DNA of 64,000 bases, from NCBI GenBank assembly GCA_052426225.1, contig JBNJNM010000006.1, positions 1,302,001 to 1,366,000 on the forward strand, in the 5' to 3' direction. The stretch is from Zancudomyces culisetae HAW-14-8. Lineage: Eukaryota; Fungi; Kickxellomycota. Below are positions 781 to 51,627 of this stretch, in pieces (position 1 is the stretch's first letter; each line of letters starts with the position of its first letter). The notes below the pieces were generated by a model, which worked only from the letters and a program-made list of their open reading frames with translations, searched no databases and was not told where the DNA came from. The position numbers and the translations under genes were made by a program.

Positions 781-1269
781 TGTATCTGGATAAGTGAAGC
801 ATAATATAGTAATATTATTTTTTTATGGATGATAGTTTAGTGATTATTTATAAAGAGTTAGTTTATATAAATTAAAGACATAGGATGAATTTGAAAGCGT
901 CATCCATGTCTTAATATACGGACATATAAATAAAAATCTAGTTAACAATAAAAAAAATATAACAAAACTACGAAAATGTACTACTCAAATGGGTATGAAG
1001 ATGAGGAGATGGCAATAAGTACCACTTCAACATCTTCCGGAAGAAGTACTGGCAGCAGCATGGATCAGGATGCTGGGGTATTAAGCCCCCAGACCTTGAA
1101 AGATCTGACCACTAGCGTGCGTCAGATACAGATCCGTAGCAGCCTAGGGAGTCCGTCGGGGATCAGACTTTCCCCTACACCTCCAAAGGGGTGTGTGTCA
1201 CCCCATTCTGCGCAAATGGGGATAAGGTTACAGAGCAATTGTGTAACCCCCAGTACCCATATTGCGACA
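781..1269 (+). mobile_element. Possible LTR-like unit Z containing the start of an ORF (ATG 976)
   Basis: Begins TGTATC after ACA-TAAT and ends GCGACA, directly abutting the next unit. It has TATAAATA at ~925 and GC-rich hairpins near its 3' end (CCCCATT/AATGGGG, GGTTACA/TGTAACC). Boundaries are uncertain. Confidence 0.35.
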
Positions 1270-1730
1270 TGTTATATAGTGGCTAGTACTACATCTAGAC
1301 GCTATATAATAACATCTCACCAATAACTAATTCATTTATATATTAATATTTAGGTTTATCAATTAATTTATATTTTAATTATTATAGGATATTTAGTATA
1401 TTATGTGTTGCCTAGTTTTTTTTAGCCTTCTATATTTTTTCTACAGCAACATTCTGGTTTATTATTAATATTTAGTTTATGTTTTAAGTTTAAGTATATA
1501 TTTAGTTTTCAAGTATATAATAGTCATTTAGTTATGGGTATAAATAGGGCTAGGAAACTAGCTATGAAAACATCATCAAATAAAAATATAACAAAAGGTT
1601 TGGTCTATATTCAATAAGTGTATACTTTTATTTTGAAAACTACAAAGAATAGCACATAGGATAGTTAGTTATAATTAGAATATATTTACAAAAGCAATAC
1701 GAAAATAGTGAATCTGTATTTTCGTCAACA
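1270..1730 (+). mobile_element. Solo LTR A
   Basis: TGTT...AACA termini, flanked by GACA on both sides (1266-1269, 1731-1734). Has terminal hairpins, TATAAATA at ~1539 and AATAAA at ~1579. Its first 17 nt match unit C at 16/17. Confidence 0.7.
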
Positions 1731-1734
1731 GACA

Positions 1735-1967
1735 TGTCGTATAGTAAACTATACTGAAGAGTTGTCCTAATTTTATTGGTTAGTTTAATAGATGTATTTT
1801 ATAAAAATAGTATAAATATGTTTATTGTGAATTAATTAATAAATTGTCCTTTTCCACAGATAAATAATAGTATAATAAATTTATATACTATTGAAATTGA
1901 CCCGTCCCGTGTAGTACTTGGTTGCAAAAGTTACCAAGTAGGAAGTTAAGCATTTTCACTACACGTA
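1735..1967 (+). mobile_element. Solo LTR B (same family as D, F, G)
   Basis: Starts TGTCGTATAGT, identical to the start of the intact element's LTR. Flanked by GACA (1731-1734, 1968-1971). Its 3' region (CCCGTCCCGTGTAGT...ACTACACG) is homologous to 8996-9064 and to the reverse complement of 7914-7985. Confidence 0.75.
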
Positions 1968-1971
1968 GACA

Positions 1972-2366
1972 TGTCATATAGTGGCTAGACGAGGTTATGA
2001 CTAGTTAATTAGTCATAACGTTATTTAATAAAGCCGCTACCTTGTGGGGATTAGTTTTTTTCATCGATAAAGTAATGTAGTCGATACCTTTTTCTAATGA
2101 CTCACAGTTATTAATTATTATTCATTATTATTTTTAGTCCAGATTTATTAATAGCAAATTTTATTATATAAGTGATTTCTACTTGAATCAGGATATTCAG
2201 AATAATCAAAAAAAAAGTATAAAAAGCGTAGAATTTTATACAAAATAAAAAGATCAGACACATAAAAAACTAGTTATCCGTCTATAATAACTTTAACAAT
2301 ACTTAGATAACAATAAGTATAAAGTTTATTATAATATAAATAGTAAATAAAATCAACTATATTTCA
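1972..2366 (+). mobile_element. Solo LTR C
   Basis: TGTCATATAG...CTATATTTCA (8/10 terminal inverted repeat). Flanked by GACA and GAC. Has TATAAAA at ~2218, AATAAA at ~2244, and a 5' hairpin GTTATGACTA/TAGTCATAAC. Confidence 0.7.
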
Positions 2367-2369
2367 GAC

Positions 2370-2736
2370 TGTCGTATAGTGCCAAATACGACTTTATTCA
2401 AACATTTTTAGTTATTTTAATACTTAGTTTTATTGGTTAATTGAAATAATATTTTTTAGGAATTTTATTGGTTTAATTACGTAACCGTAAATAAGTGAAA
2501 TTATTTCGGTTTCGATTAAAAATATATTTAGTATTTATTTTAGAGGAAGAAAAAAAAGTGAGAGATATCAGATTCGAGATATAACAATAAAAATAGGTTT
2601 TGGAAATTCAACGTATATATTGATTACGCGATTCAACGACTATATAGTATTTAAAATATAACGATAATACTAGTTATTGAACAATTATATATATATATTA
2701 AACAAATAAAGTATAAATAAATTCATTTATACGACA
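2370..2736 (+). repeat. 5' LTR (367 bp)
   Basis: Direct repeat of 7085-7450 with about 4-5 differences by eye; TG...CA ends. Confidence 0.96.
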
Positions 2737-2737
2737 G

Positions 2738-2757
2738 TGGTGCCTTCTGTCGGAATC
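2738..2757 (+). promoter_or_regulatory. Primer-binding site complementary to tRNA-Thr(AGT)
   Basis: TGGTGCCTTCTGTCGGAATC is the exact reverse complement of GATTCCGACAGAAGGCA (7514-7530) plus CCA, and lies 1 nt after the 5' LTR. Confidence 0.95.
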
Positions 2758-2777
2758 TACATTTAAAGTTATTAACA

Positions 2778-5700
2778 ATGGACAAAGTCACTAAGTTTGA
2801 GAGTGGAAAAGGAATCAACGCCGAGGACTGGATTGATGATTTCCAATTGATTGCTAAGATTAACAAGTGGGCCCCTGAGGATTGGGTTGGGTTAGTTAAG
2901 TTGTGGCTTGGGAAGTCCGAGACAATCTGGTACAAGAGAATCAAGAAGAGCTTTACGACTTGGGATATCTTTGCTAAGGAATTCAGGAAAAAATTCAGCA
3001 ATGTGTACTCCACAGGTGGAGCTTGGAACAGGTTGGGATCTATCAAACGCACCGAGTTTGAAAGTCTAGAAGAGTTAGAGATGGAGCTTGAGAAGCTCTG
3101 GGAACAAGTAGGAATAAAAGAAGAAGAGACAAAGATTGGTTCGCTAGTGAGTACATTCTCGGATGAGATTAGAGAAAGACTATCTGACAAGGAAGAATTG
3201 GATAGAGAGCAGGTACTAACCTTTGTAACCAAGATGGAGCAAAGTAAGAATGGTAGGGGAGATACTCTGGCGTTAGCGAAGAGTAGCAAGCCAGCTACTA
3301 AGAACGCCGCTACCCGAGCTGGAAAGACGGTTAAAGAGTTAACCACGGAGTCCGGGCAGTTTGGAGAGTTTCTCAAGACATTCCAGGAGCTTAGCGTCAG
3401 TCTCTTAGAAAAGTTGGATAAGACAGTCGCCCCTAAAAAGGAATACGTGAGTCAGTCAAAAGTGGAAAGGGCAAGCGCTTGGGAGTGCTACTACTGCCAT
3501 GAAAAAGGTCACCGGAGATTTGAATGTCCACTGTTCCAGAAGGAGCATGCGGAGAAGAAGGTGAATTTCTTAGATATGGACAAAGAAATCACTATAGAAG
3601 ATGAAGTACTTACAGTCGAGAAACGGAAAGCAGTAGAGTCAATGGGCAGAGTAGGCAGGCCAGCAAAAGTTAGGAACACCAGGGAGACAGAGGAACCGGA
3701 AGTCTTAACTGAGAGGAGTGTGCAACCTGAGTTTGTTAGGATTGATAAAGGTAAAAAGTTTAATTTAAGGGAAGAATTAGAAAAGGTTTACCCTAAAATA
3801 AGCATGATACAGCTGTTGCACAACTCAGAGAAGATAGCGCAAGAGTGGAAAAACATTGTCGAGGTTGGACCTAACACTGCCCTGAACGAGATAAGACTGC
3901 AAGAAAAGACTACTACTAACTGTAGTATGTCTGTGGAGATATACCAACAACAGTGGAAAGCTGTAGTGGACACGGGAGCCGCCTGCTCCGTCGTAACTAC
4001 TGGTGCTTTGCTGAAGATTGGTTTGGAGCCGACACACAAAAGTTCACATGTTATCATCACGGCGGATGGTAAACGACATGAGACTCTTGGGATAGTTACG
4101 GGAGTACCTATTATGATTAGTAGAATTGAGTTTGTTGCATCCTTAGTGGTGCTGGGCAACAAGGTACCTACCTTAATTTTAGGTATGGACTGGCTGCTTA
4201 AGCATAAAGCAAACCTAAACCTAGGAATTCCGGAGTTGAGACTGCCAGTTGACAGAGCCGAAGTAGTTACCCCGCTGGTAACAACCAAAGCGACGCCGGT
4301 GGTTGAAGAAGAATGGGATTTATATATAGTTTCTGAAGCGCCCATAGGAACACAAGGAAAATTAAATAATGGTATAGTGGAACTGTTAGAGGAATATGAT
4401 GATTTATTTGTAGAGGATATAGATAAATTAAAACAAACTAACGTTGCAGAGCATAAGATAGTACTCACAGATAACAGGCCAATCAAACAGAGGCCCTATA
4501 GGATACCATTTCGACTGCAAGAGGAAGTAGGGTTGGAAATCGATAGGATGCTTGAGCAAAAAGTTATCGCACCAAGTAACGCCGAGTGGTGCTCCCCAGT
4601 TGTTGTTGTCCAGAAGAAGAATGGTAAGCTGCGCATCTGCGCAGACTATAGGAAGTTAAACGCGGTGACGGTTAAAGACTCGTACCCGTTGCCGATCATT
4701 CAGGACCTTTTTATGGCCTTAGCTGGTGCGTGTATCTTTACAACATTAGATGCACTCAGCGGCTTTTGGCAAATAAAGATGTCAGAAGAGGATAAGGAGA
4801 AAACCACATTTGCTTTGCCAGGAGGGGGGAGTTATCTCTACAACGTCATGCCGTTCGGTTTGACAAACAGTCCCTCTACCTTTCAAAGAACGATGGAGAC
4901 TGTGTTAAAAAAAGTGCTTTGGAAAAAAGCTGTTGTCTTTGTAGATGACATAATAATTTTTTCTAAAAGCGAGGACAGTCATTTAGAAGATTTAAGAGAG
5001 GTTATGGAGTTATTAAAAGAAGGGCAAATACAGTTACACAAAGACAAGTGCAAAATAGGATTGTATAGAATTGACTACTTGGGGCACGTTATTTCTGGTG
5101 ATGGTATAGCTACAAGTTCGGTAAAAGTAGAATCAATTGCGAATTTGAAGCCTCCAACTTGTGTGAAGGAAGTTCAGTCATTTTTAGGGATGACTGGATA
5201 CTATAGAAAATTTATTGAAAGATATGCTATAGTCGCTAACCCACTAACACAATTATTAAAAAAAGGTACAGGTTGGAAATGGGGAAAAGAACAAGACGAA
5301 GCGTTTCGAGGAATGAAAAATGCTATGACAAATACGCCAGTACTTGCACATCCGAATTGGGACGAAACTTTTATTGTAACAACGGACGCAGCGATATGTG
5401 GAGTCGGAGCGATTTTATCGCAAGAGGTTGATGGAAATGAGAGACCGATTGAATACGCGAGCCGAACTACAAACAAGGCGGAAAGAAATTATTCAATTAG
5501 TCACCTGGAGGGACTGGCGGTCGTGTGGGCCGTAAAGAAGTTCAAGTTTTATGTTTACGGAAGAAAATTTATTATTAGGACGGATCATAAAGCACTACTT
5601 AACATGTTTAACGGTGAAGAACTAAGTGGAAGACTAGCCAGGTGGGCTATGTTTCTGCGTAACTTTGAGTTTGATATAGTCCATATAGCTGGAAAGGTCA

Positions 5701-7073
5701 ATCCAGCGGACCATTTGTCAAGAAGTGGAATACATGAGATAACCGAGGATGAGCATGTTGAGGTGTTCGGAATGGTATACAGTGAAGAAAGTTTAGTTAG
5801 AAATTATTTATTAGGCGGTACTATACCGCGAGAAGCTACTGTTGAATTAGTTGAAAAAATAAAGAAAAAAGCAAAATATTTTAAGGTGATAGATGGTGTT
5901 ATTTACAAATGGGTAAGAGGTAAGTTGAAAGAAGTTCTAACGGAAGCGGAAAGCATCGAACTAGTCAAAAAGGTCCATGAGGAAACACACGAGGGGATCG
6001 AAAATACTTGGGCTAGAGTGAGCAGAGATCACTATTCGAAAGGGTTATACAGGCAGGTAGCCGACTACGTCAAGAGGTGTCACACTTGTCAGACGTACAA
6101 GTATGGGAGAACTCGAAAGCACGGTTTGAATTCAGTACATGCGGTTAGGCCTTTCGAAGTATTCGGTATGGACGCAATCGGTCCCATTAATCCTGTTTCT
6201 GAAACAGGGAATCGCTATATACTAACTGCAATAGACTATTGTACTAAATGGCCTATTGCAGTTGCAGTTGAAAATTTACTAAGTGAGACTATTGTGGATT
6301 TTGTAATAAACGAAATTGTGACTTACTATGGGGTACCGCAAAAGATAATAACGGATAGAGGTTCGAGTTTTGTCAGTAATGTATCGACGGAAGTTTACTC
6401 CTGGTTGCAACTGGACCACAGTCCGACTACTTCTTACCGCCCGCAGTCGAATGGACAAGTTGAACGGTTAAATAAAACATTAGTAAGTTTATTACAAAAA
6501 ATATGCAAAGTAGATAAGAATAATTGGGATAGGTACTTGTGGAAAGTACTACTTACTATGCGTACAATGAACAGTAAAAGTACCGGATATACACCTGCCG
6601 AGATGCTTTATGGAACCGAATTGCAAATGCCTTCGACGTGGAAGACGAACGGGATAATCGAAGACGACGTCGAACAAATCGAGCACCGACTTAAACTGAT
6701 GCAATCTGATTTACCACAAATTCGAAAAATCGGTGTTCGAAAAGCCGTTGCAGCGAAAGAAGCCGAGAAGATTCGATATAATAAGACTGTTAAACCCACG
6801 AAATTTCAAGTCGGAAATAAAGTTTTGAAAGTAGTAGAATACGATAGAGGTAAATTGGAATCTCTCTGGGAGGGTCCATTTACTATTATAAAAAGGTTTA
6901 GTAAAGGTGCCTACCTTATAACAGACCAGCTTGGGAACCGAGATTTGGTCAATGGAGATTTACTTAAGCTATATCACGAATCGAGATTTATGATCCCTGA
7001 AATTACTAGTCGCCTGAGACCTAAGTTAAATACGTTTAAACAAGCACGTTATAATGAGGACATTATAGCTTGA
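2778..7073 (+). CDS. Gag-Pol polyprotein (single ORF, 1431 aa)
   Basis: CCHC knuckle CYYCHEKGHRRFEC; protease VDTGAA; RT (MPFGL, FVDD); RNase H (TDA, LE, TDH); integrase HHCC, D-D-E core and GPF motif. No chromodomain is evident. Confidence 0.97.
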   Translation: MDKVTKFESGKGINAEDWIDDFQLIAKINKWAPEDWVGLVKLWLGKSETIWYKRIKKSFTTWDIFAKEFRKKFSNVYSTGGAWNRLGSIKRTEFESLEELEMELEKLWEQVGIKEEETKIGSLVSTFSDEIRERLSDKEELDREQVLTFVTKMEQSKNGRGDTLALAKSSKPATKNAATRAGKTVKELTTESGQFGEFLKTFQELSVSLLEKLDKTVAPKKEYVSQSKVERASAWECYYCHEKGHRRFECPLFQKEHAEKKVNFLDMDKEITIEDEVLTVEKRKAVESMGRVGRPAKVRNTRETEEPEVLTERSVQPEFVRIDKGKKFNLREELEKVYPKISMIQLLHNSEKIAQEWKNIVEVGPNTALNEIRLQEKTTTNCSMSVEIYQQQWKAVVDTGAACSVVTTGALLKIGLEPTHKSSHVIITADGKRHETLGIVTGVPIMISRIEFVASLVVLGNKVPTLILGMDWLLKHKANLNLGIPELRLPVDRAEVVTPLVTTKATPVVEEEWDLYIVSEAPIGTQGKLNNGIVELLEEYDDLFVEDIDKLKQTNVAEHKIVLTDNRPIKQRPYRIPFRLQEEVGLEIDRMLEQKVIAPSNAEWCSPVVVVQKKNGKLRICADYRKLNAVTVKDSYPLPIIQDLFMALAGACIFTTLDALSGFWQIKMSEEDKEKTTFALPGGGSYLYNVMPFGLTNSPSTFQRTMETVLKKVLWKKAVVFVDDIIIFSKSEDSHLEDLREVMELLKEGQIQLHKDKCKIGLYRIDYLGHVISGDGIATSSVKVESIANLKPPTCVKEVQSFLGMTGYYRKFIERYAIVANPLTQLLKKGTGWKWGKEQDEAFRGMKNAMTNTPVLAHPNWDETFIVTTDAAICGVGAILSQEVDGNERPIEYASRTTNKAERNYSISHLEGLAVVWAVKKFKFYVYGRKFIIRTDHKALLNMFNGEELSGRLARWAMFLRNFEFDIVHIAGKVNPADHLSRSGIHEITEDEHVEVFGMVYSEESLVRNYLLGGTIPREATVELVEKIKKKAKYFKVIDGVIYKWVRGKLKEVLTEAESIELVKKVHEETHEGIENTWARVSRDHYSKGLYRQVADYVKRCHTCQTYKYGRTRKHGLNSVHAVRPFEVFGMDAIGPINPVSETGNRYILTAIDYCTKWPIAVAVENLLSETIVDFVINEIVTYYGVPQKIITDRGSSFVSNVSTEVYSWLQLDHSPTTSYRPQSNGQVERLNKTLVSLLQKICKVDKNNWDRYLWKVLLTMRTMNSKSTGYTPAEMLYGTELQMPSTWKTNGIIEDDVEQIEHRLKLMQSDLPQIRKIGVRKAVAAKEAEKIRYNKTVKPTKFQVGNKVLKVVEYDRGKLESLWEGPFTIIKRFSKGAYLITDQLGNRDLVNGDLLKLYHESRFMIPEITSRLRPKLNTFKQARYNEDIIA

Positions 7074-7081
7074 AGGGGGAG
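7072..7081 (+). promoter_or_regulatory. Polypurine tract
   Basis: GAAGGGGGAG, 3 nt before the 3' LTR. Confidence 0.85.
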
Positions 7082-7084
7082 TGC

Positions 7085-7450
7085 TGTCGTATAGTGCCAA
7101 ATACGACTTTATTCAAACATTTTTAGTTATTTTAATACTTAGTTTTATTGGTTAATTGAAATAAAATTTTTTAGGAATTTTATTGGTTTAATTACGTAAC
7201 CGTAAATAAGTGAAATTATTTCGGTTTCGATTCAAAATATATTTAGTATTTATTTTAGAGGAAGGAAAAAAAAGAGAGATATCAGATTCGAGATATAACA
7301 ATAAAAATAGGTTTTGGAAATTCAACGTATATATTGATTACGCGATTCAACGACTATATAGTATTTAAAATATAACGATAATACTAGTTATTGAACAATT
7401 ATATATATATATTAAACAAATAAAGTATAAATAAATTCATTTATACGACA
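7085..7450 (+). repeat. 3' LTR (366 bp)
   Basis: Direct repeat of 2370-2736. Confidence 0.96.
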
Positions 7451-7457
7451 GCCAATT

Positions 7458-7530
7458 GCCTTCTTGGCTCAGTTGGCAGAGCGTCTGCCTAGTAAGCAGA
7501 AGGTCGTCGGTTCGATTCCGACAGAAGGCA
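7458..7530 (+). tRNA. tRNA-Thr(AGT)
   Basis: Cloverleaf: acceptor GCCTTCT/AGAAGGC, D stem GCTC/GAGC, anticodon arm TCTGC-CTAGTAA-GCAGA, T arm GTCGG-TTCGATT-CCGAC. Confidence 0.96.
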
Positions 7531-7536
7531 CTGTTA

Positions 7537-7608
7537 GCCTGATTAGCTCAGTGGTAGAGCGTTGGTCTTGTAAACCAAAGGTCGGGTGTTCAATCCACCC
7601 ATTAGGCA
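7537..7608 (+). tRNA. tRNA-Thr(TGT)
   Basis: Cloverleaf: acceptor GCCTGAT/ATTAGGC, anticodon arm TTGGT-CTTGTAA-ACCAA, T arm GGGTG-TTCAATC-CACCC. Confidence 0.95.
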
Positions 7609-7612
7609 TACA

Positions 7613-7617
7613 TTTTT
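7613..7617 (+). terminator. Pol III T-run terminator for the tRNA-Thr pair
   Basis: First T5 run downstream of both tRNAs. Confidence 0.7.
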
Positions 7618-7834
7618 ATTACTATTAATTCATTTTAAAGTTCTATACTGTATAATAAAGGTTACATAATTTTTTCTGCGATTCAATCGTGATTCCTTAG
7701 TAAGAGATAACTACCAATGAGAGCTAGCAAAAAACTTGTAGCTGTTATACTACACTATTCAAACTCAGAAATCACAATAGCTGAAATAATATATCAGATA
7801 TCATTTTATTTCTACATATTACGATTTGGCAAAA

Positions 7835-7906
7835 AGGTCCTACCGAGAGTCGAACTCGGGCTACTGGATTCAAAGTCCAATGTCATGACCGTTAGACCAT
7901 AGGACC
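7835..7906 (-). tRNA. tRNA-Gln(TTG)
   Basis: Reverse complement GGTCCTATGGTCTAACGG...TTGGA-CTTTGAA-TCCAG...CCGAG-TTCGACT-CTCGG-TAGGACCT, running into a T tract (A5 at 7831-7835). Confidence 0.95.
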
Positions 7907-7913
7907 AGTGCTG

Positions 7914-8167
7914 TGTTGTGTGTTGCCATGTTTAACGTCCCATTTAGTGTTTTTTAAACCAAATAACACACGGGACGGGTCATTTTACTTACCTTTTACT
8001 ATATGCTGCGAATTATTATACAGTACTTTGGATTTTGCAAAAGAGGACATTTATTTAGTTAAACAAAAATTTCAATTTTATACAATAAAATCTACAAAAA
8101 ATCTAACTAAAAATTACAAAACACAATTAACCAATGGAAATGTTTCACCTATTGTAGGCATACAACA
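7914..8167 (-). mobile_element. Solo LTR D with perfect 4-bp TSD
   Basis: TGTTGTGTG...CATACAACA termini with GCTG on both sides (7910-7913, 8168-8171). Lies 7 bp upstream of tRNA-Gln. Roughly 90% identical to 8547-8799. Confidence 0.85.
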
Positions 8168-8172
8168 GCTGT

Positions 8173-8541
8173 TGTCGTGAATTTAAATCATTATAATTTA
8201 TATTTTATCCAATGGGTTTTTAATTAGTTGCAAAGATGGATAAATTAATTTCACGTAACATCCTTGTAAATCTGAGAATCACACCGTCATAGATGAGTCA
8301 TGGGAATCATCTATAAATGATTTCAACATCTTTTCCCATTCAACAAGGGGAAACACCCTGTTTCAATATTATTATTATAATTCATATTTTACATGTTTAA
8401 ATCAGTTATAACTTTATAATAAAATTTATTATAGTAGTAGTTCGTTAGACCCAAAAAATTATAAAAGGGCAAATAATTAATATCTAGTTTTCGATATGAC
8501 TTAAGCAAATAAAAATATAAAACTATAATATTCACACGACA
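8173..8541. mobile_element. Solo LTR E
   Basis: TGTCGTG...CACGACA 7-bp inverted termini; flanks CTGT/GTGT (3/4 match). Confidence 0.7.
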
Positions 8542-8546
8542 GTGTG

Positions 8547-8799
8547 TGTTGTGAGTTGCCATGTTTAACCTCCCATTTAGTGTTTTTTAAACCAAATAAC
8601 ACACGGGGCGATTCATTTTACTTACCTTTTACTATATGCTGCGAATAATATATAGTAAATTATGATTTTGCAAAAGAGGACATTTATTTAGTTAAACAAA
8701 AATTTCAATTTTATACAATAAAATCTACAAAAAATAAACTAAAAATTACAAAACTCGTTTAACCAATGATAATTTTTCACCTATTGTAGGCATACAACA
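8547..8799 (-). mobile_element. Solo LTR F (second copy of D)
   Basis: Full-length direct repeat of 7914-8167 with about 20 differences by eye. Confidence 0.85.
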
Positions 8800-8802
8800 T
8801 CT

Positions 8803-9064
8803 TATCATATAAAATATTTATGTTATAGATTTCTCCTATTGTAATTAATAGTGTATTTTTATTTGTTATTTATTTTATAGTTATTCTAGTTGATTTGTAG
8901 TATTAAATCAATGAAATATTTAGTTAAATAAATTTGTCATCTTTTGAATATAATAATAGTACATATAAATATATATTAATGGTAACTATTTGCGGCCCGT
9001 CTCGTGTAGTGCTTGGAAGCCAATAGCTTTCAAGTAGGACGTAAATCATTACTACTACACGACA
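8803..9064 (+). mobile_element. Solo LTR G (B/D/F family, inverted relative to D and F)
   Basis: 3' end CCCGTCTCGTGTAGTGCTTGG...CTACACGACA is homologous to unit B. The 5' end is decayed (TATCATATA). ATCT occurs at 8799-8802 and 9065-9068. Confidence 0.65.
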
Positions 9065-9067
9065 ATC

Positions 9068-9176
9068 TGTAATATTTTATTTATAATTTAAATAACATTA
9101 ACCCGTTATGGGCAATTAAGTGTCTAAAAACTTAGTTATTTACTTCTCGAGTGAGTATTTATGCTAACTCGTTACA
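9068..9176. mobile_element. Short TGTAA...TTACA unit H (possible deleted LTR)
   Basis: 5-bp inverted termini and position in the stack only. Confidence 0.3.
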
Positions 9177-9187
9177 GTAACTAGCAA

Positions 9188-9723
9188 TGTCGTAAGTGTA
9201 GACAATTGTGTTTATTTTCTCAATATTCTTTATTACTACTCAAAATTAATATTATATATTATTTAAAAAAAAGATTCAAATCCTATTACTTTTCTTGATA
9301 ACGACTAACCTGTTATCAATGATAGAGATTGAATAAAACCCTCCATAGGGAGAAAAGTCCAATCACCAATGATAATAAATAAATAGATTAAATTAAATAA
9401 ATAAACTGCCAATCAAAGTTGGGCAGGTGTAAACCATCGTTATTTATATGACTAGACTTGTTAGATTCAATTTATTATCAATTCTATTTGGTTCTACTAG
9501 AGGGGTGGTATCATTAGACTCGGTCTAACCCTTTTAACTAGTTACCACTTTCTAGTTATACATTTAAACGGAACCGGAACATTTATATGGATCAAAAATT
9601 GACAATTTATTTAAGATTCAAAATAACAATTTCTTCAATACTAAATTTTACTAGAAAAACTAATAAAATTACTAACTATAAAATAAACCAATAGTATGCA
9701 AACGTTCTATTTTGCATACAACA
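9188..9723 (-). mobile_element. Solo LTR I
   Basis: TGTCGTAAG...CATACAACA. On the minus strand it starts with hairpin GTATGCAAA/TTTGCATAC followed by ATTGGTT, like the other LTRs here. Confidence 0.55.
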
Positions 9724-10063
9724 GTCACAGTAATAGAATAATTGTACCGTCAATACTAATTAAGTACGAATTCTTATCATGAATATGACATGAATAGATT
9801 TTGAATTAGTATTGTTACAATACTGATTCAAAACACTTATTTTAATTGAAACATTTTGTTGTTTTAATCATTTACTTAAGTAATGATAAACACAAAACTA
9901 AAATTATAATAATAACATTAATCTTACAATAGTTAATCATAATATTATTACATGTTTTTATTAGTAATATTTATTGAATCTATATAGTAATATTTTTTCG
10001 CTATGAAATCCTTAGCGATAAAATATTATCTTAACCTAATAAAAAAATTTTCAAGCAACAATC

Positions 10064-10839
10064 TGTTATGAATACACATGTATCATAACAGTTGTCGGGT
10101 GAGGTTGGGTGCAGCCTCATCCTTTGTCGGGTTTTTCAATTGTAAAAAAACATGATCCATAATATCAGCAAATGGGTCACGTGATTCTTTGGGATCCACT
10201 TCCATAGAAGTGGCTCCCGAACGGTCACTATCAGATGAGTATCTGCCCTCATCTTTTTCTGACTGGATCCATCTGGGTCTAAATTTACTCATGAAGCCTG
10301 ACATTCTTTATGTGAGATTTTAATAGTTTCTAATATGTCAAAACTTAATATTCATTAACTAGCCGTAGCACTATTCCTAATAAACTTCTTAATTATCCTA
10401 AACCTGGATTTTAATTCTGAATTGATATTTATTTATCTTACTTTCCTTTTTCTTATTAAAACTATCAAAAGAGCTGAGGAATCCTCATCGAGTCTTCCTT
10501 CGCTTATATATATACTATTTTATTTAACCTAATAAAAGCTAATTCAAATAACCTATGTTTCTACTGTATATACTGAGTTGTATCGTGTGTTATCGTTGTT
10601 ACTTCGTTTTCGTTTTCATATTGTTCCTATATTTGAATGTTGATTTCCTATAATCTTTTTAATTGTATTTTTCGTTTTATAATTTTTTTTGTGTTATTAT
10701 ATATATTTTCAAAAAAAAATAATTATCATAGTATTTTTAGTGATCAACTTTTAATAGAATGTTAGTTGATTGTTTATGTAGTAAATTAAATAATTGTTAA
10801 AAAATGTGAATTCCGATCGACATCGGAATACACACGACA
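10064..10839 (-). mobile_element. LTR-like unit K containing a 73-codon ORF (10083-10304)
   Basis: Minus strand TGTCGTGTG...TCATAACA. Hairpins at both ends (ATTCCGAT/ATCGGAAT; TGTTATGA/TCATAACA) and a TATA-like run at ~10505. The junction ACA-ATC-TGT (10058-10066) is identical to 9062-9070. Confidence 0.5.
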
Positions 10840-13800
10840 CAGTATTGTATAGTTAATACAACATTAATTAAAATATATTAATGACAATACATGTGTATCA
10901 TTAATATTAATTAATTATAAGTTTATATATTTAATTATTCTATTTTATTAGTTTTAAACATAAATATACTCATTAATAAAGATGTATGCTTATAGTTTAT
11001 TATAAATAGTTTTAATACTCATTTAAGTTTTATATTAATATTTAAACAAACTTAATTGTATAAAAGGAGATACAAATCATTTTCATGAACAATTAAGTTT
11101 GTCAATCTCGTTTATCAATAATAAAGATATTATTAACTAATATTATATTATTACTGTGTGTTTTAAACTAGTATAATTAATAATAACTTTTATAAATTAA
11201 CTGTGTGTTATTAGTTAATATCAATATTATTGGTATAAATTGGTATAATATTGGTATCTAACATTATTTTATAAAAGTAAATTAATTTTATTTATTCACG
11301 TAAAAGATTCAACATGTCGAAATGAAGATATTTACAAAATGAAATTGTACCAATTACAGTTTGTATAATATTATTAATTTTAAACTTGTCTTCTGTAAAT
11401 AAGTACAATTTATACAAATGTAACTGAATACAGAATACAAATTCAATATGACCTAGATAATCTTAAATCAACTTTTAAATAGAATTTCTAAAATTCAATT
11501 TACAAGCATATGAACAAATATAATATCTAAAATTATGAACCGAAGAAGACTTAGAGTAAACTAAAATACGCATCAATTGAATTTTTCACTCACCGTAGTT
11601 AATACCATAGTCTTGTTCATAAGTTTGATAGATACATTTATTGTTTAGAATGAATTGTACTTAGATAGTATTTTTTGAAAACCACTGTAGTAAAAGTAAA
11701 TAACACTTTCGAAATCTATTGAACGAAAACTTCAGAGAAAAAATCTTATTCAATATATATACTACATATTTCTAAACTAATTTATGTTTATCAAATAGTA
11801 ACTGAGGATTAATAACTACACGTTAGCTTTTTAATATAATTTTATCTGATAAATGGTTACTTTAATAATCATCTATATTAACAATAATATATTATAGTGG
11901 TTTTATATATTTTAATTAACGAATATTATGGGATAAAGTTTATGATAGTTTAAATTGATAAATACCTTTACTTACAAATTTAAATTATATTATTTTTTAA
12001 AATATTGTTTTTACATAATACTTTTAAACAAAATAATTACAATTATCTACTATTATTCTTTGTCTGAAAGTCTTGATTATTACTTAATACTGTACAAATA
12101 GTTGTTAATAATAGTATATTTTTTATGTTTCAGAAAAATTAAATATATTAATTAAACATATGTAATTGAACGTGTTTTATTGAATATACTGGTTGAAATT
12201 CCTAATGAATTACAGCTAGGTAAATCCATTTAATAAACACTTATGTAATAGAATAAATGTATTAGGGTGATAGATGTCACCCGATTGGTTATGACAATTT
12301 TTTATAAAGATTCATTCTAGGTTTTTTCAACTAACTACCTTGAATAATTAAAATTGATTAACATTACTAAAGTACACTAATAATTTATAAAATGATTTTA
12401 TATTAGCCTTAATTTATTCTATTTATTTTAATGAATACATCTTTCTATTATTACAAACTAGTTCTAATAATAATACTACTAGTCGAGCGGTAATATTAAT
12501 GGGGAATTTTTAAATTAATATATAGTTGCTTAATACTATAAATTATTTTTTACATTTTGTTGTTTATAATTCGATTATATAAATAAACTGAGATGGATAT
12601 ACTCTCACACCCTAAAAATGTCTTAAAAAACGTTTATTTTGGTCTTAATGTAGTGTCAAAACTCGTTGGAGTATGGATTTTTGGTTTAGTACTATAATTT
12701 ATATATTAATATACAATTTTTTTTAGATAAGAAATGTAAAGTTTAAAGAAAAAACAATAGTTTTTTAATTTTCGAATCACTAAAAATTATGTCAGAGATT
12801 GACATTACTTAAGGTTTAGCTTTCTAATCAAATATATCATAATATCAACTAGTTTAAAGATTATTAATTTTTTATGAATATAATGTTCTAGGATATTCTA
12901 GGGAAATCCCAAAACGTGAATTGCAAATTTCATAATTTAAATAGACACAATGGTCTATACTATATATTTATTATTGCTATGATTAGTAGACTCTGACTAT
13001 CTTTTATAAGTTTGAAAATTGTCATTTGAGTTAAATATTTAACATATTTATTATTATTTACCATACATTATTTCAGTTATATTTTAAATAAATAGATGAT
13101 ACGACTTCTATTTATAACAATTCATTCGTTGATCTCGTTCAACTTCTATTAGTATAACATATCTAATTTATCTCGACTTTGTTTTTATAAAATTATGAAT
13201 ATATTTTATAATTTAACTGTGATATTAAGTTATAAACTATAGTATTGTTTAATTATTGGTACAAATAAACCGAATTTAATTTTATTTCAAATTTAAACCA
13301 GTTGGTTGATTGCTAAACGAAATCCTGATAATTTCTATCTAGCTACTTGAATCAAATTCAACAAAAGTTAATAATTATGAGTACTCTATTGTTCAGTACA
13401 ATTAAATATATAGGATTTTATTACGATACCAGTCCAAGTATCAATTTCAATTTTAAAATATATGCTACACAGTTTTTGTGAATAACTTATATTTCTAACA
13501 TGGTGAAATATTTTTATAAAAATTTAAGTTAAGACCAGCTATATTATTGCACAGCGCTTGTTAGAGCGAAAATTATCATAATTGTCTCCATAAATATCAT
13601 ACCATTAATATTACCGAGTACACTATTAACTATGTATAACTTGTGTTAAATTTAACAATCTCATTATATAAATGTGCTTTAATAAATTAGCAATGTATTT
13701 TATTGTACGCAATTCTATTGAAATAGGAAATATAATCAATAGTTAAATTGCAAATATAGTATCTTCAAAACTCAGGGCTCATTAAAGCAGACATAACAGC

Positions 13801-15125: not shown

Positions 15126-15923
15126 TTATTTAGCGCCATTTTTTCCACCATCCTTTCCATCGTTTTTGCCTTTGTCCTTTCCATCGTTTTTGCCTTTGTC
15201 CTTTCCATCGTCTTTATAACCCTTTCCATTATCTTTATAGCCCTGACCATTATCTTTATAGCCATTCTTATCATCTTTATAGCCATGTTTATCATCTCTG
15301 TAAACATTTTCACAATCTTTATAGCCATGCTTATCATCTTTATAGCCATGCTTATCATCTTTATAGCCATGCTTATCATCTTTATAGCCATGCTTATCAT
15401 CTTTATAGCCATTTTTATCATCTTTATAGCCATTTTCACAATCTTTATAACGGTTTCCATTGTCTTTATAACGATCTCCATCATCCTTATAACGATTTCC
15501 ATCGTCCTTTCCACAATCCCTATAACCATATACATCATTCTTTCCATTATTATACAAAAAGCCATATCCACCGTTTTTTCCATCATCCTTTCTGCCGTTC
15601 TTTCCATCATCTTTTACATCATCTCTTTTGTTGTATCCTCCACAGCTTTTATAACTATTTTTATCATCGTATACTACGCCATATTCTCCTTTTTTTCCAT
15701 CATCTTTTCCATAATGTGCATTATCATGATATTCAGGCTTCATCTGCACACTGTAGACGCTTTTTTCGTCACCACGTGCTTTGTAGCGGTTATATCTAGG
15801 ATTACTGCGTCTCTTGAGCTGCACGCCAAGGTTATGAGCTCCATTTACTCCACCCGGGATATGCATACTATTTGCGCACGCGGAGTAAAGCAATGTAGTT
15901 ATGAATAGCTTTCCAATTGTCAT
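15126..15923 (-). CDS. Secreted Gly/Tyr/Lys/Asp-rich repeat protein (GYKDDKH heptads)
   Basis: 265-aa ORF with a signal-like N-terminus, an LKRR dibasic site and 21-bp tandem repeats. The leader is homologous to 51040-51627. Confidence 0.85.
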   Translation of the reverse strand: MTIGKLFITTLLYSACANSMHIPGGVNGAHNLGVQLKRRSNPRYNRYKARGDEKSVYSVQMKPEYHDNAHYGKDDGKKGEYGVVYDDKNSYKSCGGYNKRDDVKDDGKNGRKDDGKNGGYGFLYNNGKNDVYGYRDCGKDDGNRYKDDGDRYKDNGNRYKDCENGYKDDKNGYKDDKHGYKDDKHGYKDDKHGYKDDKHGYKDCENVYRDDKHGYKDDKNGYKDNGQGYKDNGKGYKDDGKDKGKNDGKDKGKNDGKDGGKNGAK

Positions 15924-46406: not shown

Positions 46407-49046
46407 ATGAAAACCGATAATTTATATGGTATTATTTCCACGCTGCTACTGGCATCATCAGCGGTGGCTGAAGTTGGTACAGAGAATCGACTTGTACGTA
46501 ATGTCATGAGGTTGAAGCAAAAACGAATTGATCGGTTAGAGCGCAGGCAAGACAATGGTGTGGTTATTACATTACCTGGTTTCACATATGCTGGTACAAC
46601 TGTGTTCGGTATTCCAGTTAGGGGTACTACAATAAATCCAGCTACATATACAATTACAGGAGCGACAGCTATCCCAGGCTTAACCATCCCAGGAATTGTG
46701 ACAATTCCAGGATTTACTTCTGTAGCACCTCCTACGCCTGACCCAACCCCTGATCCAACTCCTGACCCACAACCAACTCCTGACCCAACCCCCGATCCAC
46801 AACCAACTCCTGATCCAACTCCTGACCCCACACCCTCATCACCAAATGCTGGGATATTTACCATACCAGGAATAACATTTGCCGGTACAACTATACTTGG
46901 AATTCCAATCCCAGGAACTACACGAAGTCCAGTTACAATAACAGGACCCACAGCAATCCCTGGTCTAACAATTCCTGGAATTATCACAATTCCTGGATTT
47001 ACTTCAATGGCACCTCCTACACCCGATCCAACTCCTGATCCACAACCAACTCCTGACCCCACACCCTCATCACCAAATGCTGGGATATTTACCATACCAG
47101 GAATAACATTTGCCGGTACAACTATACTTGGAATTCCAATCCCAGGAACTACACGAGGCCCAGTTACAATTACAGGACCCACAGCAATCCCTGGTCTAAC
47201 AATTCCTGGATTTATTACAATTCCTGGATTTACATCTAGTCGACCAAATAGTTCAGCACCCACACCCACACCCACAAATACACCTATACCTCCTAACATG
47301 ACTCTAGCACAATTCTTAGCCTTGTTGAATCGTTTGAATGTTCCAGGAGTACCAACGCTGGACAATCTCAGTGATTGGCTGGGAGTACCTATACCTGAAA
47401 ATATGTCACTGAATGAATTTTTTGCTTTACTTTCAAGCTTAGACCTTCCATCTCTTGCTCTCAAAGAAATACTGGCTATAATTGAGGGTTCTGATATTTC
47501 TGGCATTATTTCTGATATTATCAATTGGTTACAAGACTTACGGAATCACACACATACAAGAACAAGACCTTCACGTACATCCAGCAGCAGTTCCACATCA
47601 AGTACTACGTCTTCGACTACAACATTACCTCCTGTGCCACCAAAAATGACATTAGCTCAATTTTTGGCTCTGCTAAACAGACTACAAATTCCAGGAGTGC
47701 CAACACTGGATGATCTTATTGATTGGTTAGGCGTACAATTGTCCGGAGATATGTCTCTTTTTGATTTCTTTGCTTTGCTTGTAGATCTGGGACTGGATGC
47801 AATTCCATTGGATATTTTTATGAACCTATTTAGACCAGGAAATATTGATGATGTTATTAATTTTATTGTTAACTGGATTAACGAATTACGTGACCATCAC
47901 CGCACTAGAACCATACCAACGCCAACAAGAACAAGAACTCGCCCAACATGGACTCGCCCAACATGGACCCGTTCAACGGGAACCGATTCAACTGAAACTG
48001 ACCCCACAAGAACTCGCCCAACAAGAACACGACCGACATGGACTCGCCCAACATGGACTCGTCCAACGGGAACTGATCCAACTGAGATTGATCCAACTGA
48101 AACTGATCCAACTGAAACTGACCCTACAAGAACTCGCCCAACAAGAACACGACCAACATGGACCCGCCCAACATGGACTCGCTCAACTAACACCTACCCA
48201 ACAAATATCTATCCAACAAATACCAACTCTGCCTCTGTCGATAGCGTATTCTCACCCACATACGGTCCCATAACTACCGCTATTCCTTGTACCCAAACTA
48301 CTTACACCTCCATCGTTTATCCTACTAACCCCATCACTGTTACCACCACTGTTACCGGTCCAGGTTTCACTACTGAAACTGTTATTACTGTTACACCTAA
48401 CACTACTGGAACTCCAGGTTGTCAAACTGAACCTGTAACCATAACAGTAACTCCAAACACCGCAGGTTGCACCTACTGTACCGTCCCTACCACAATCACC
48501 TATACTCCCAGCCCAACTCTTGCCACCATAACTACATATCCTACTGGTCCTATCACTATAACTGTCACTCCAAACACTCCAGGTTGTACTTACTGCACTG
48601 TTCCAACCACTATCACCTACACACCCATCCCCTCCATTACTACCATCACTATCTACCCTACACAAACCATTGATTCTATTCCTACTGTAACTACTATCAC
48701 TATATACCCTACCACATCTATTACTCTCACTGTTTACCCACCACCTCCTCCTCCCACACCCACTGTATCTATTGCCACTATCTCCATTAACTCGGTATCC
48801 TGTGTATGTCCGGAAGTGACTACATATTCCAATTGCATACCCGTTACTTTCTACCTACCCGCATCTACTGTCACTGTAACTGCCCCTCCAATTACTGTCA
48901 CTGCTTCATGTACTTTTGTAACGCTAAACAGTTTGCCAACTTTCTCTACTTCGTGTACTCCTGACGTAAATCCCACCATAGCCTCAGTTTCCACTGAAAC
49001 CTGTATTACAGAACCCGTTACAAGAACCATAGTTGTCAACTACTGA
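46407..49046 (+). CDS. Secreted modular Thr/Pro-rich protein of unknown function
   Basis: 879-aa ORF with a signal peptide, a dibasic site (ERR) and several kinds of internal repeat. Confidence 0.85.
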   Translation: MKTDNLYGIISTLLLASSAVAEVGTENRLVRNVMRLKQKRIDRLERRQDNGVVITLPGFTYAGTTVFGIPVRGTTINPATYTITGATAIPGLTIPGIVTIPGFTSVAPPTPDPTPDPTPDPQPTPDPTPDPQPTPDPTPDPTPSSPNAGIFTIPGITFAGTTILGIPIPGTTRSPVTITGPTAIPGLTIPGIITIPGFTSMAPPTPDPTPDPQPTPDPTPSSPNAGIFTIPGITFAGTTILGIPIPGTTRGPVTITGPTAIPGLTIPGFITIPGFTSSRPNSSAPTPTPTNTPIPPNMTLAQFLALLNRLNVPGVPTLDNLSDWLGVPIPENMSLNEFFALLSSLDLPSLALKEILAIIEGSDISGIISDIINWLQDLRNHTHTRTRPSRTSSSSSTSSTTSSTTTLPPVPPKMTLAQFLALLNRLQIPGVPTLDDLIDWLGVQLSGDMSLFDFFALLVDLGLDAIPLDIFMNLFRPGNIDDVINFIVNWINELRDHHRTRTIPTPTRTRTRPTWTRPTWTRSTGTDSTETDPTRTRPTRTRPTWTRPTWTRPTGTDPTEIDPTETDPTETDPTRTRPTRTRPTWTRPTWTRSTNTYPTNIYPTNTNSASVDSVFSPTYGPITTAIPCTQTTYTSIVYPTNPITVTTTVTGPGFTTETVITVTPNTTGTPGCQTEPVTITVTPNTAGCTYCTVPTTITYTPSPTLATITTYPTGPITITVTPNTPGCTYCTVPTTITYTPIPSITTITIYPTQTIDSIPTVTTITIYPTTSITLTVYPPPPPPTPTVSIATISINSVSCVCPEVTTYSNCIPVTFYLPASTVTVTAPPITVTASCTFVTLNSLPTFSTSCTPDVNPTIASVSTETCITEPVTRTIVVNY

Positions 49047-51039: not shown

Positions 51040-51627
51040 ATGGCAATACTCAAATTGACAGTTGGAAAGATGGTTTTGGCCGCATTGGTCTACACTGTTT
51101 GCGCAAATGGTATGCGTATCATGGGTGAGGAAAATGGAGTCAACAACGTTGGTGCACAACTCAAAAGACGCAACAACAACCTCTATGTACGCGGTCCACA
51201 AGTATATGGCAACAACGCATATAGTAGTGCAGAAAGTAGTAGCGCAGACAACACCAATACAGATACTGCCAGCTCAGATACTGCCAGTTCAGATCCCGCC
51301 AGTTCAGATCCCGCCAGCTCAGATACTGCCAGTTCAGATCCTGCCAGCTCAGATCCCGCCAGCTCAGATCCCGCCAGTTCAGATCCTGCCAGTTCAGATC
51401 CCGCCAGTTCAGATCCTGCCAGTTCAGATCCCGCCAGTTCAGATCCTGCCAGTTCAGATCCCGCCAGTTCAGATCCTGCCAGTTCAGATCCCGCCAGTTC
51501 AGATCCTGCCAGTTCAGATCCCGCCAGTTCAGATCCTGCCAGCTCAGATCCCGCCAACCCAGATCCTACGAACACAGATCCTACGAACACAGATCCCGCC
51601 AACCCAGATCCTACTGCCGCAACATAA
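51040..51627 (+). CDS. Secreted acidic repeat protein (DPASS pentads)
   Basis: Signal-like N-terminus, LKRR site and ~20 15-bp repeats. TATAAATA at ~50925. The leader is homologous to 15126-15923. Confidence 0.85.
   Translation: MAILKLTVGKMVLAALVYTVCANGMRIMGEENGVNNVGAQLKRRNNNLYVRGPQVYGNNAYSSAESSSADNTNTDTASSDTASSDPASSDPASSDTASSDPASSDPASSDPASSDPASSDPASSDPASSDPASSDPASSDPASSDPASSDPASSDPASSDPASSDPASSDPANPDPTNTDPTNTDPANPDPTAAT

Follow-up and report, generated by a model that had tools for sequence, protein, structure and literature searches.

Three tRNA genes lie close together in a 64,000-bp stretch of the genome of Zancudomyces culisetae, a Harpellales gut fungus of mosquito larvae, and both outer sides of this small cluster are occupied by rows of long terminal repeat (LTR) retrotransposon units, referred to below as the left and right stacks; the whole stretch is referred to as the window. 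For comparison, ten contigs (L001 to L010), nine from Z. culisetae (GCA_001969505.1) and one from Smittium culicis, were fetched via gag-pol homologues, their choice being based on retrotransposon genes and not on tRNAs. The fetched contigs are short and often end inside elements, and the counts given here refer to the window and these contigs rather than to the whole genome. In the S. culicis contig (L008), an assembly gap separates the LTR from the tRNA cluster, which makes it uninformative on the offset between them. The tRNA genes were called with ARAGORN and Rfam; mature starts were taken from Rfam and checked by acceptor-stem pairing, the ARAGORN start being one base earlier in three of the six tRNAs.

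The tRNA cluster and its flanking LTR units

The two Thr genes on the plus strand and the Gln gene on the minus strand are convergent, tail to tail, so that their 5′ flanks point outward. No T-run is present between the Thr genes, and one follows the second at about 7617. The genes, their leaders and the element next to the Thr pair are as follows.

7458-7530 (7458-7531 in the feature list), plus strand: tRNA-Thr(AGT), called by ARAGORN and by Rfam (72 bits), first of the close pair and target gene of the left stack
7537-7608, plus strand: tRNA-Thr(TGT), called by ARAGORN and Rfam, 5-6 bp past the first Thr gene
7835-7906, minus strand: tRNA-Gln(TTG), called by ARAGORN and Rfam, target gene of the right stack
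7451-7457, plus strand: leader GCCAATT, separating the LTR end of element A from tRNA-Thr
7907-7913, minus strand: leader AGTGCTG (CAGCACT on the tRNA strand), between tRNA-Gln and solo LTR B1
2370-7450, plus strand: element A, an intact Ty3/gypsy retrotransposon with LTRs, primer-binding site, polypurine tract and gag-pol

By its sequence, element A is a Ty3/gypsy (Metaviridae) LTR retrotransposon. Its LTRs (2370-2736 and 7085-7450) are direct repeats of 98.6% identity with TG...CA ends, and enclose a single gag-pol open reading frame (ORF; 2778-7073, 1431 amino acids) and a polypurine tract at 7072-7081, before the 3′ LTR. Pfam placed RVP at residues 385-481, RVT_1 at 611-772, RT_RNaseH at 835-963 and Integrase_H2C2 together with rve at 1061-1222, that is, protease, reverse transcriptase (RT), RNase H and integrase (IN) in the order of Ty3/gypsy elements. 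The best PDB matches are Ty3 RT (RT-RNase H part, 3.5e-86) and Ty3 IN (7.8e-20), and the closest proteins to the A gag-pol are all from Z. culisetae, one of them 100% identical across its covered part; the species was recognised from these homologues, as exact-protein look-ups of the gag-pol and of the thiolase of the window returned no match. The primer-binding site (2738-2757) is the exact 20-nt complement of the 3′ end of tRNA-Thr(AGT) plus CCA. The idea that element A adjoins tRNA-Thr because this tRNA is its primer was rejected, as copies with the same primer-binding site lie at Gly and Val genes; the match to the adjacent gene looks coincidental.

Both boundaries next to the tRNA genes are well defined. 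The left one, at 7450, is set by the LTR pair of element A and by its copy in L001, and the right one, at 7914, rests on five independent copies of the family to which B1 belongs, the alignment ending at exactly this base in each of them. Further outward, the following units were distinguished, given from the tRNA genes to the periphery, first for the left stack and then for the right stack.

1972-2369, plus strand: U4, with a 5′ end (TGTCATATAGTGGCTAG) typical of the D clade; supported by its typical termini only, with a weak alignment
1735-1971, plus strand: U3, solo LTR, 84-86% identical to L010 687-910
1270-1730, plus strand: U2, solo LTR of the D clade, 68-77% identical to L002 9530-10007
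781-1269, no strand: outermost left unit of the original prediction; no repeat copy found, unverified as an LTR
7914-8167, minus strand: B1, solo LTR of the abundant B family, rank 1 on the Gln side, with 0 private changes
8173-8541, minus strand: C, solo LTR, distant relative of a unit in L005 (L005-M), about 58% identity overall
8547-8799, minus strand: B2, second B-family solo LTR, rank 3, 90% identical to B1, with 16 private changes
about 8803-9064, plus strand: unit of the U3 family, opposite in orientation to B1, C and B2
9068-9206 and 9211-9456, no strand: two putative units recognised by TG...CA-type termini alone
about 9459-9723, minus strand: E, solo LTR, 84% identical to L002 1721-1999
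10842-11262, plus strand: N, LTR-like unit beyond the end coordinate given earlier, 76-85% identical to L010 193-651

The units backed by homology are 1270-1730, 1735-1971 and 2370-7450 on the left and 7914-8167, 8173-8541, 8547-8799, about 8803-9064 and about 9459-9723 on the right. The homology of 8173-8541 is weak overall, though both of its termini, including the last 15 nt, align with those of L005-M, and its flanking 4-mers agree at 3/4 positions. The homologues of U3 (L010 687-910) and E (L002 1721-1999) each abut a full element directly, U2 also partly matches the LTRs of the L006 element, and the 3′ part of 8803-9064 matches window 1901-1965 and L010 783-913 and 168-106. U4 yielded no homologue by blastn and has no canonical ACA end; it may be truncated at its 3′ end. 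In the sensitive blastn search of unverified units, shuffled queries reached 47 bits and matches no better than this were discarded; no homologue above this control level was found for 9068-9206 and 9211-9456.

The original prediction, made from the sequence of the window, described outward-facing tRNA 5′ flanks, an LTR junction exactly 7 bp from the mature tRNA on both sides and no LTR between the tRNAs. ARAGORN and Rfam bear out the tail-to-tail arrangement, the 7-bp offset is correct on both sides (7451-7457 and 7907-7913), and 7609-7834 has no similarity to any LTR. It was also right that the only intact element of the window (A) is tRNA-proximal and that a perfect duplication (GCTG) flanks the Gln-proximal LTR. 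The end-to-end rows, proposed to extend from 781 to 10839 with units mostly 3-5 bp apart, hold for the inner units, with spacers of 0-5 bp. At the periphery they required revision. The GC-richer segment 781-1269 contains an ORF (976-1269) with a hypothetical protein from Z. culisetae as its sole match, and the segment probably represents the flank that the tRNA locus originally had. No homologue was found for 9724-10063 and 10330-10836, which remain unverified as LTRs, 10084-10293 (minus strand) is a 69-amino-acid ORF inside the supposed right stack, likewise unverified as an LTR, and the right row extends to 11262. The remaining 52 kb of the window shows essentially no similarity to any collected LTR unit.

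Insertion position and target duplications

Four of the fetched loci also contain a unit that directly faces a tRNA gene.

L001: 99.7% copy of element A, spacer 7 bp, tRNA-Gly(GCC)
L003: related element A2, spacer 7 bp, tRNA-Val(AAC)
L006: element D of a different family, spacer 7 bp, tRNA-Ile(AAT)
L009: B-family solo LTR, spacer 9 bp, tRNA-Tyr(GTA)

Together with the two sides of the window, the offsets between the proximal LTR end and the mature tRNA 5′ end are thus 7, 7, 7, 7, 7 and 9 bp, in agreement with the proposal that the elements land at a tRNA-defined position (6/6 proximal units at 7-9 bp, five at exactly 7). The direction of the element or LTR is that of the tRNA in all six cases, which involve at least three families. 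Neither the 3′ flanks of the tRNAs nor the intervals between them showed LTR homology in the window and the sampled loci. Wherever the 3′ side of a stack reaches unique DNA in the sampled contigs it meets a tRNA gene, with one exception. Neither 5S rRNA nor U6 genes, which are also transcribed by RNA polymerase III (Pol III), were detected by Rfam in the window or in any fetched locus.

At least 15 LTR families with the common termini TGT(C/T)(A/G)T...ACA take part in the stacks, where units are not nested in each other and spacers outside the window measure 1-8 bp. Units are co-oriented in L004, L005, L006, L007 and L009. The row in L005 comprises ten units, one of which is a full element; the order is B, full element F, B and element G in L004, and B, 7 bp and element D in L006, while L007 has an internally deleted element followed by another element, and L009 has a full element and two solo LTRs before tRNA-Tyr. 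At L007 2733-2873, the RT region of the deleted element is joined straight to the last 137 bp of its LTR, after which come the spacer CAAT and a full element. A solo LTR of another family is nested in a Ty3-like integrase gene (L010 5255-5716) with a perfect 5-bp duplication, ACTGG. Since this other LTR family nests in the same genome, the tRNA habit is not common to all LTR elements of the fungus, and the tidy stacking is a property of the present clade of elements and not of the genome. Copies of the nesting family also occur at L005 2124-2245.

Target duplications were sought by comparing 4 bp on each side of 22 units whose ends were defined by family alignments or canonical termini. A perfect 4-bp duplication flanks 6/22 units, against 3.2% expected from mismatched pairs (P about 6e-5). 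The duplicated units are U2 (GACA, 1266-1269 and 1731-1734) and B1 (CAGC, that is, GCTG on the plus strand, 7910-7913 and 8168-8171) in the window, and L005-Ba (ACAT), L005-M (CAAC), L005-J′ (CTAC) and L009-B (ACTA). All six are solo LTRs (6/15 solo LTRs), and three further units agree at 3/4 positions. When 5 bp are compared instead, the units with perfect 4-bp duplications match at only 0-1 of 5 positions, and as the matches vanish the duplication is 4 bp, unlike the 5 bp of Ty3 and Tj1. At tRNA-Gln, the outer 4 bp of the 7-bp leader form one copy of the B1 duplication. An insertion at offset d that duplicates 4 bp would leave a spacer of 4 + d(old) - d(new), and small differences in d would account for the observed spacers of 0-8 bp. 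Spacers within one stack are, by eye, alike: GTCA/GTTA/GTT in L004, ACTAC/CTAC and ACAT/ACATAA in L005, and CAGC(ACT)/ACAGC on the Gln side of the window.

We hold with considerable confidence that Ty3/gypsy elements of a radiation have inserted again and again next to this tRNA cluster, on both of its outer sides, through Pol III-directed integration, of which the stacks would be a by-product. The Pol III transcription complex assembled on the tRNA gene would hold the intasome and impose strand transfer at a fixed distance and in one orientation, placing the 3′ LTR end 7 bp, occasionally up to 9 bp, upstream of the first base of the mature tRNA. The insertion would leave the gene and a short leader intact, and the site would remain reusable. 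A new copy would then enter between the tRNA and the previous copy and displace older copies outward, and LTR-LTR recombination would reduce most of them to solo LTRs. The expected outcome is a head-to-tail, non-nested row of many families with spacers of a few bp; repeated insertion at one site thus offers an explanation for end-to-end stacks without nesting. While the position, orientation, duplications and stacking, and some polarity, are observed directly, the molecular tether can be proposed by analogy: the integrase may be bound to the Pol III initiation complex (TFIIIB; Brf1/TBP) as in Ty3, and the -7 position may be close to the tRNA transcription start, judging from Ty3 (PMC8632968) and Tj1 (PMC4600332).

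Stack order and competing explanations

In the original prediction, each new element pushes older ones outward and position records age. Part of the evidence is in line with such polar growth. The target duplications of L005-M and L009-B take in the last 1-2 bases of their outer neighbours (H and X, respectively), which implies that the outer unit was present first, and no converse case, a duplication containing bases of the inner neighbour, was found among the compared units. A comparison of divergence with rank was possible for one family only, B, with six copies: in their alignment, the rank-1 copies B1 and L009-B have 0 private changes and the rank-3 copy B2 has 16. The LTR identity of tRNA-adjacent full elements is 98.1-99.1%, and that of two mid-stack elements is 84.7% and 92.1%. 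Identity to the nearest relative, from very thin sampling, does not fall steadily with rank in either window stack.

Several observations weigh against repeated tRNA-directed insertion as a complete account. None of the seven full-length elements (window A, L003 9132-14679, L006 71-5460 and those of L002, L004, L005 and L009) has a target duplication, including three young tRNA-adjacent elements in which the whole leader can be compared (window A, L003 A2 and L006 D); for element A, the flanks are AGAC and GCCA. The L002 stack has its ends within the contig, and Rfam detects no tRNA or other Pol III gene there; forward units of this stack face reverse units with their 3′ ends, 2 bp apart, 8008-9539 being inverted. 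The unit at 8803-9064 of the window is inverted as well. With regard to age, a B copy of L004 that has 7 private changes is proximal to an element whose LTRs are 99.2% identical, and in L005 the B copy on the distal side of an element with LTRs of 92% identity has 2 private changes, the more proximal B copy having 6. In the integrase of the A type, judged at the sequence level, nothing recognisable appears to correspond to the Ty3 chromodomain that serves as a "ruler". Moreover, the sample outside the window amounts to about 100 kb and was chosen through gag-pol homologues.

Further details bear on some of these points. For the missing duplications of full-length elements, 5-bp or shifted duplications, carried-over bases adjacent to the polypurine tract and duplications spanning the tRNA were considered at the intact elements, and none fits more than one of them. 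Copies of 5 kb may have undergone ectopic exchange, or upstream DNA may have been deleted during insertion; U4, with its missing canonical end, would fit such a deletion. Window 7600-12000 and the end of the L002 stack yielded no decayed tRNA in a relaxed Rfam search. An inversion between the L002 inverted repeats 1253-1715 and 9071-9539 was considered and rejected, as the orientations would still not be uniform. Private changes may reflect subfamily rather than age, which weakens this evidence in both directions. As to the integrase, Pfam detected no chromodomain in A, and the alignment to Ty3 reaches only the C-terminal SH3-like domain, ending at residue 1424 of the 1547 in Gag-Pol and leaving about 50 query residues; the Ty3 mechanism is therefore not simply transferable.

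The L002 stack without a tRNA would be expected if new copies aimed at the ends of resident LTRs and not at the tRNA, which would then only seed a row able to grow at any junction. The young element F, its LTRs 99.2% identical, between two B LTRs in L004 and the six places where another element follows a B 3′ end within 3-7 bp also suit this idea. However, the six stack ends that reach a tRNA all stop 7-9 bp away from it, and perfect duplications repeat the leader, for example CAGC at tRNA-Gln and ACTA at tRNA-Tyr. Insertion at inner junctions would sometimes yield a perfect duplication with the first bases of the proximal neighbour, and none was seen. The spacer lengths are consistent with 4 bp plus small offset differences. 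Targeting of LTR ends is thus considered improbable.

It is likewise unlikely, in our view, that the targeting is real and the order arose mainly from DNA-level recombination, gene conversion, inversion and segmental duplication, in which case the stacks would hold little time information. The full-length elements devoid of duplications, the non-monotonic ages in L004 and L005 and the inverted segments (window 8803-9064 and L002 8008-9539) are all compatible with such reshuffling, as are two features of L005: its I-J pair recurs in the opposite order as J′-I′, and the flanks of L005-Bb are mismatched, the right one (ACTAC) being identical to the tRNA-Tyr leader in L009. Against it, most units are co-oriented and intact to the last base, the perfect duplications of six solo LTRs have persisted, spacers of the same stack look alike by eye, and the contrast between B1 and B2 together with the two duplications that overlap a neighbour fits polar growth. 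Random insertion, with only harmless copies next to tRNA genes surviving selection in a compact genome, is hardly credible: the rest of the window is gene-dense, and tRNA flanks are classic safe havens (PMC5006619), but selection could not give exactly 7 bp in 5/6 cases or a single orientation, leaves the unit-free 3′ flanks and the 226 bp between the tRNAs unexplained, and sits poorly with another LTR family nesting in an integrase gene with a 5-bp duplication (L010 5255-5716).

Under repeated Pol III-directed insertion, the order along a stack is best regarded as roughly, not strictly, chronological, scrambled by recombination, inversions and perhaps other entry routes. The idea of position as a record of age therefore stands in part: the neighbour-overlapping duplications and the 0 versus 16 private changes of B1 and B2 speak for it, and the ages in L004 and L005 are non-monotonic. 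Outward displacement of ordered units likewise applies only in part, given the L002 stack with its head-on units and missing tRNA and the inverted unit in the right window stack. A stronger version, in which most stacks are faithful polar records, each tRNA gene carries an ordered list of families with the newest adjoining it, and the departures are later rearrangements, is conceivable but doubtful. If true, a relative timeline of the element radiation would emerge from stacks compared genome-wide and among strains, much like the order of CRISPR spacers.

Relation to known elements

Pol III-directed integration is the textbook case of a retroelement choosing a safe landing site. In the reviews consulted (PMC5911963, PMC5006619), the Pol III-directed LTR elements listed all come from ascomycete yeasts or dictyostelid amoebae. 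Among known elements, the most similar behaviour is shown by Tj1, a Ty3/gypsy element of Schizosaccharomyces japonicus, which inserts 5-11 bp upstream of mature tRNA 5′ ends and always in the transcriptional direction of the Pol III gene, a trait its authors called unique (PMC4600332). Its LTR termini are of the TGTCA...TGACA type (10.1101/2022.12.06.519325), and the S. japonicus centromeres contain "retrotransposon arrays" near tRNA clusters (10.1101/309815). The Z. culisetae elements share with Tj1 the offset of a few bp, the fixed forward orientation and the TGTCA-type LTR ends. They differ in host (Zoopagomycota/Harpellales versus Ascomycota), in the length of the duplication (4 bp versus 5 bp) and in having one continuous ORF, whereas gag and pol of Tj1 are separate and joined by stop-codon readthrough. 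In Z. culisetae, moreover, the habit extends over at least 15 LTR families, with an offset more sharply defined than that of Tj1 (7 bp in 5/6). The precedents named in the original prediction, Ty3 and DGLT-A, were too narrow a set, since the Tj1 range covers a 7-bp offset (PMC4600332).

Ty3 provides the best structural match for RT and IN, also inserts a few bp from the Pol III start without disrupting the gene, and leaves solo LTRs (sigma) upstream of tRNA genes (PMC8632968, PMC5911963). It is positioned by TFIIIB, the position being set by the C-terminal chromodomain (IN residues 446-511) (PMC8632968). Unlike the elements described here, it lies about 15-17 bp from the mature end, produces a 5-bp duplication and is found in both orientations (PMC8632968, PMC5911963). 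DGLT-A of Dictyostelium and beta/Tca8 of Candida albicans are Ty3/gypsy elements that likewise occur, with solo LTRs, just upstream of tRNAs in compact genomes; their windows are wider and more distant, 13-33 bp and 6-30 bp, respectively (PMC5006619, PMC5911963). DGLT-A resembles the present elements in its single ORF and, unlike them, is found in either orientation. In Saccharomyces cerevisiae, LTR insertions of Ty1 to Ty4 are often nested in one another. Their clusters are similar in that many families occur 5′ of tRNAs and solo LTRs dominate (PMC5911963), and differ in that insertions spread over up to about 1 kb instead of abutting at a single site. As an analogy only, HeT-A/TART telomere arrays (PMC5537684) and CRISPR arrays also grow by addition at one end, so that position carries relative age. 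Their machinery is unrelated, and the polarity in Z. culisetae would be a passive by-product of site-specific integration, with an order visibly scrambled in places.

The type of targeting is therefore already known from Ty3 and Tj1, and what is new is the fungal group and phylum and the unusually neat genomic footprint. A literature search retrieved neither a study of transposable elements at tRNA genes of Harpellales nor a description of ordered end-to-end LTR stacks at tRNA genes, Tj1 included; a metagenome scan for the B-LTR end gave no match. The Pol III-targeting habit is now placed in a zygomycete-grade gut fungus, with an unusually sharp offset and a fixed orientation that was previously reported only for Tj1. 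With many families and an integrase seemingly without the Ty3 chromodomain ruler, these elements may offer a second natural system for studying how the distance between intasome and TFIIIB is measured. The tidy stacks would also be a convenient natural substrate for dating transposition waves and for studying tRNA gene function when the upstream region is replaced by successive LTRs.

Some minor observations were made on the LTRs themselves. In several families, a TATAAATA or AATAAA motif lies 16-25 nt before the LTR 3′ end (window about 7425-7433) and is presumably the poly(A) signal of the element. Once inserted, an LTR carries this TATAAATA/AATAAA motif to about 25-32 nt upstream of the tRNA, the position expected of a TATA-like TFIIIB site, and a role there is speculative. 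Another motif, GACCCGTCCCGTGT, with its surroundings about 60 nt from the LTR 3′ end (window about 1894-1953, 7928-7986, 8561-8619 and 8996-9061), occurs in the B family, in the family of 1735-1971 and also in the unit at 8803-9064. Window 10064-10090 and L010 169-195 contain the same 27-bp palindrome, TGTTATGAATACACATGTATCATAACA, in both cases between LTR pieces, and the palindrome is similar at its ends to the termini of the LTR nested in L010. A stretch of 55% identity to the ORF at 10084-10293 is present at L006 7351-7443, on the downstream side of another tRNA locus.

Pieces of mariner-like transposase genes border LTR stacks at L002 1-654 and about 10560-11212 and at L003 16970-17753, L002 1-654 being 92% identical to L003 17623-16970. 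Tandem repeats occur within long ORFs of the window (46554-48661, 51254-51612 and 15207-15501), which points to repetitive coding sequence. The tRNA genes themselves tend to form tight pairs or clusters, with gaps of 3-6 bp that contain no T-run, as at window 7531-7536 and L001 4855-4858, and the same spacing is seen in S. culicis (L008 6383-6673 and 10766-11048), which suggests that Pol III transcribes closely spaced tRNA genes as polycistronic units. The S. culicis contig contains two copies, inverted relative to each other, of a cluster of at least three tRNAs.

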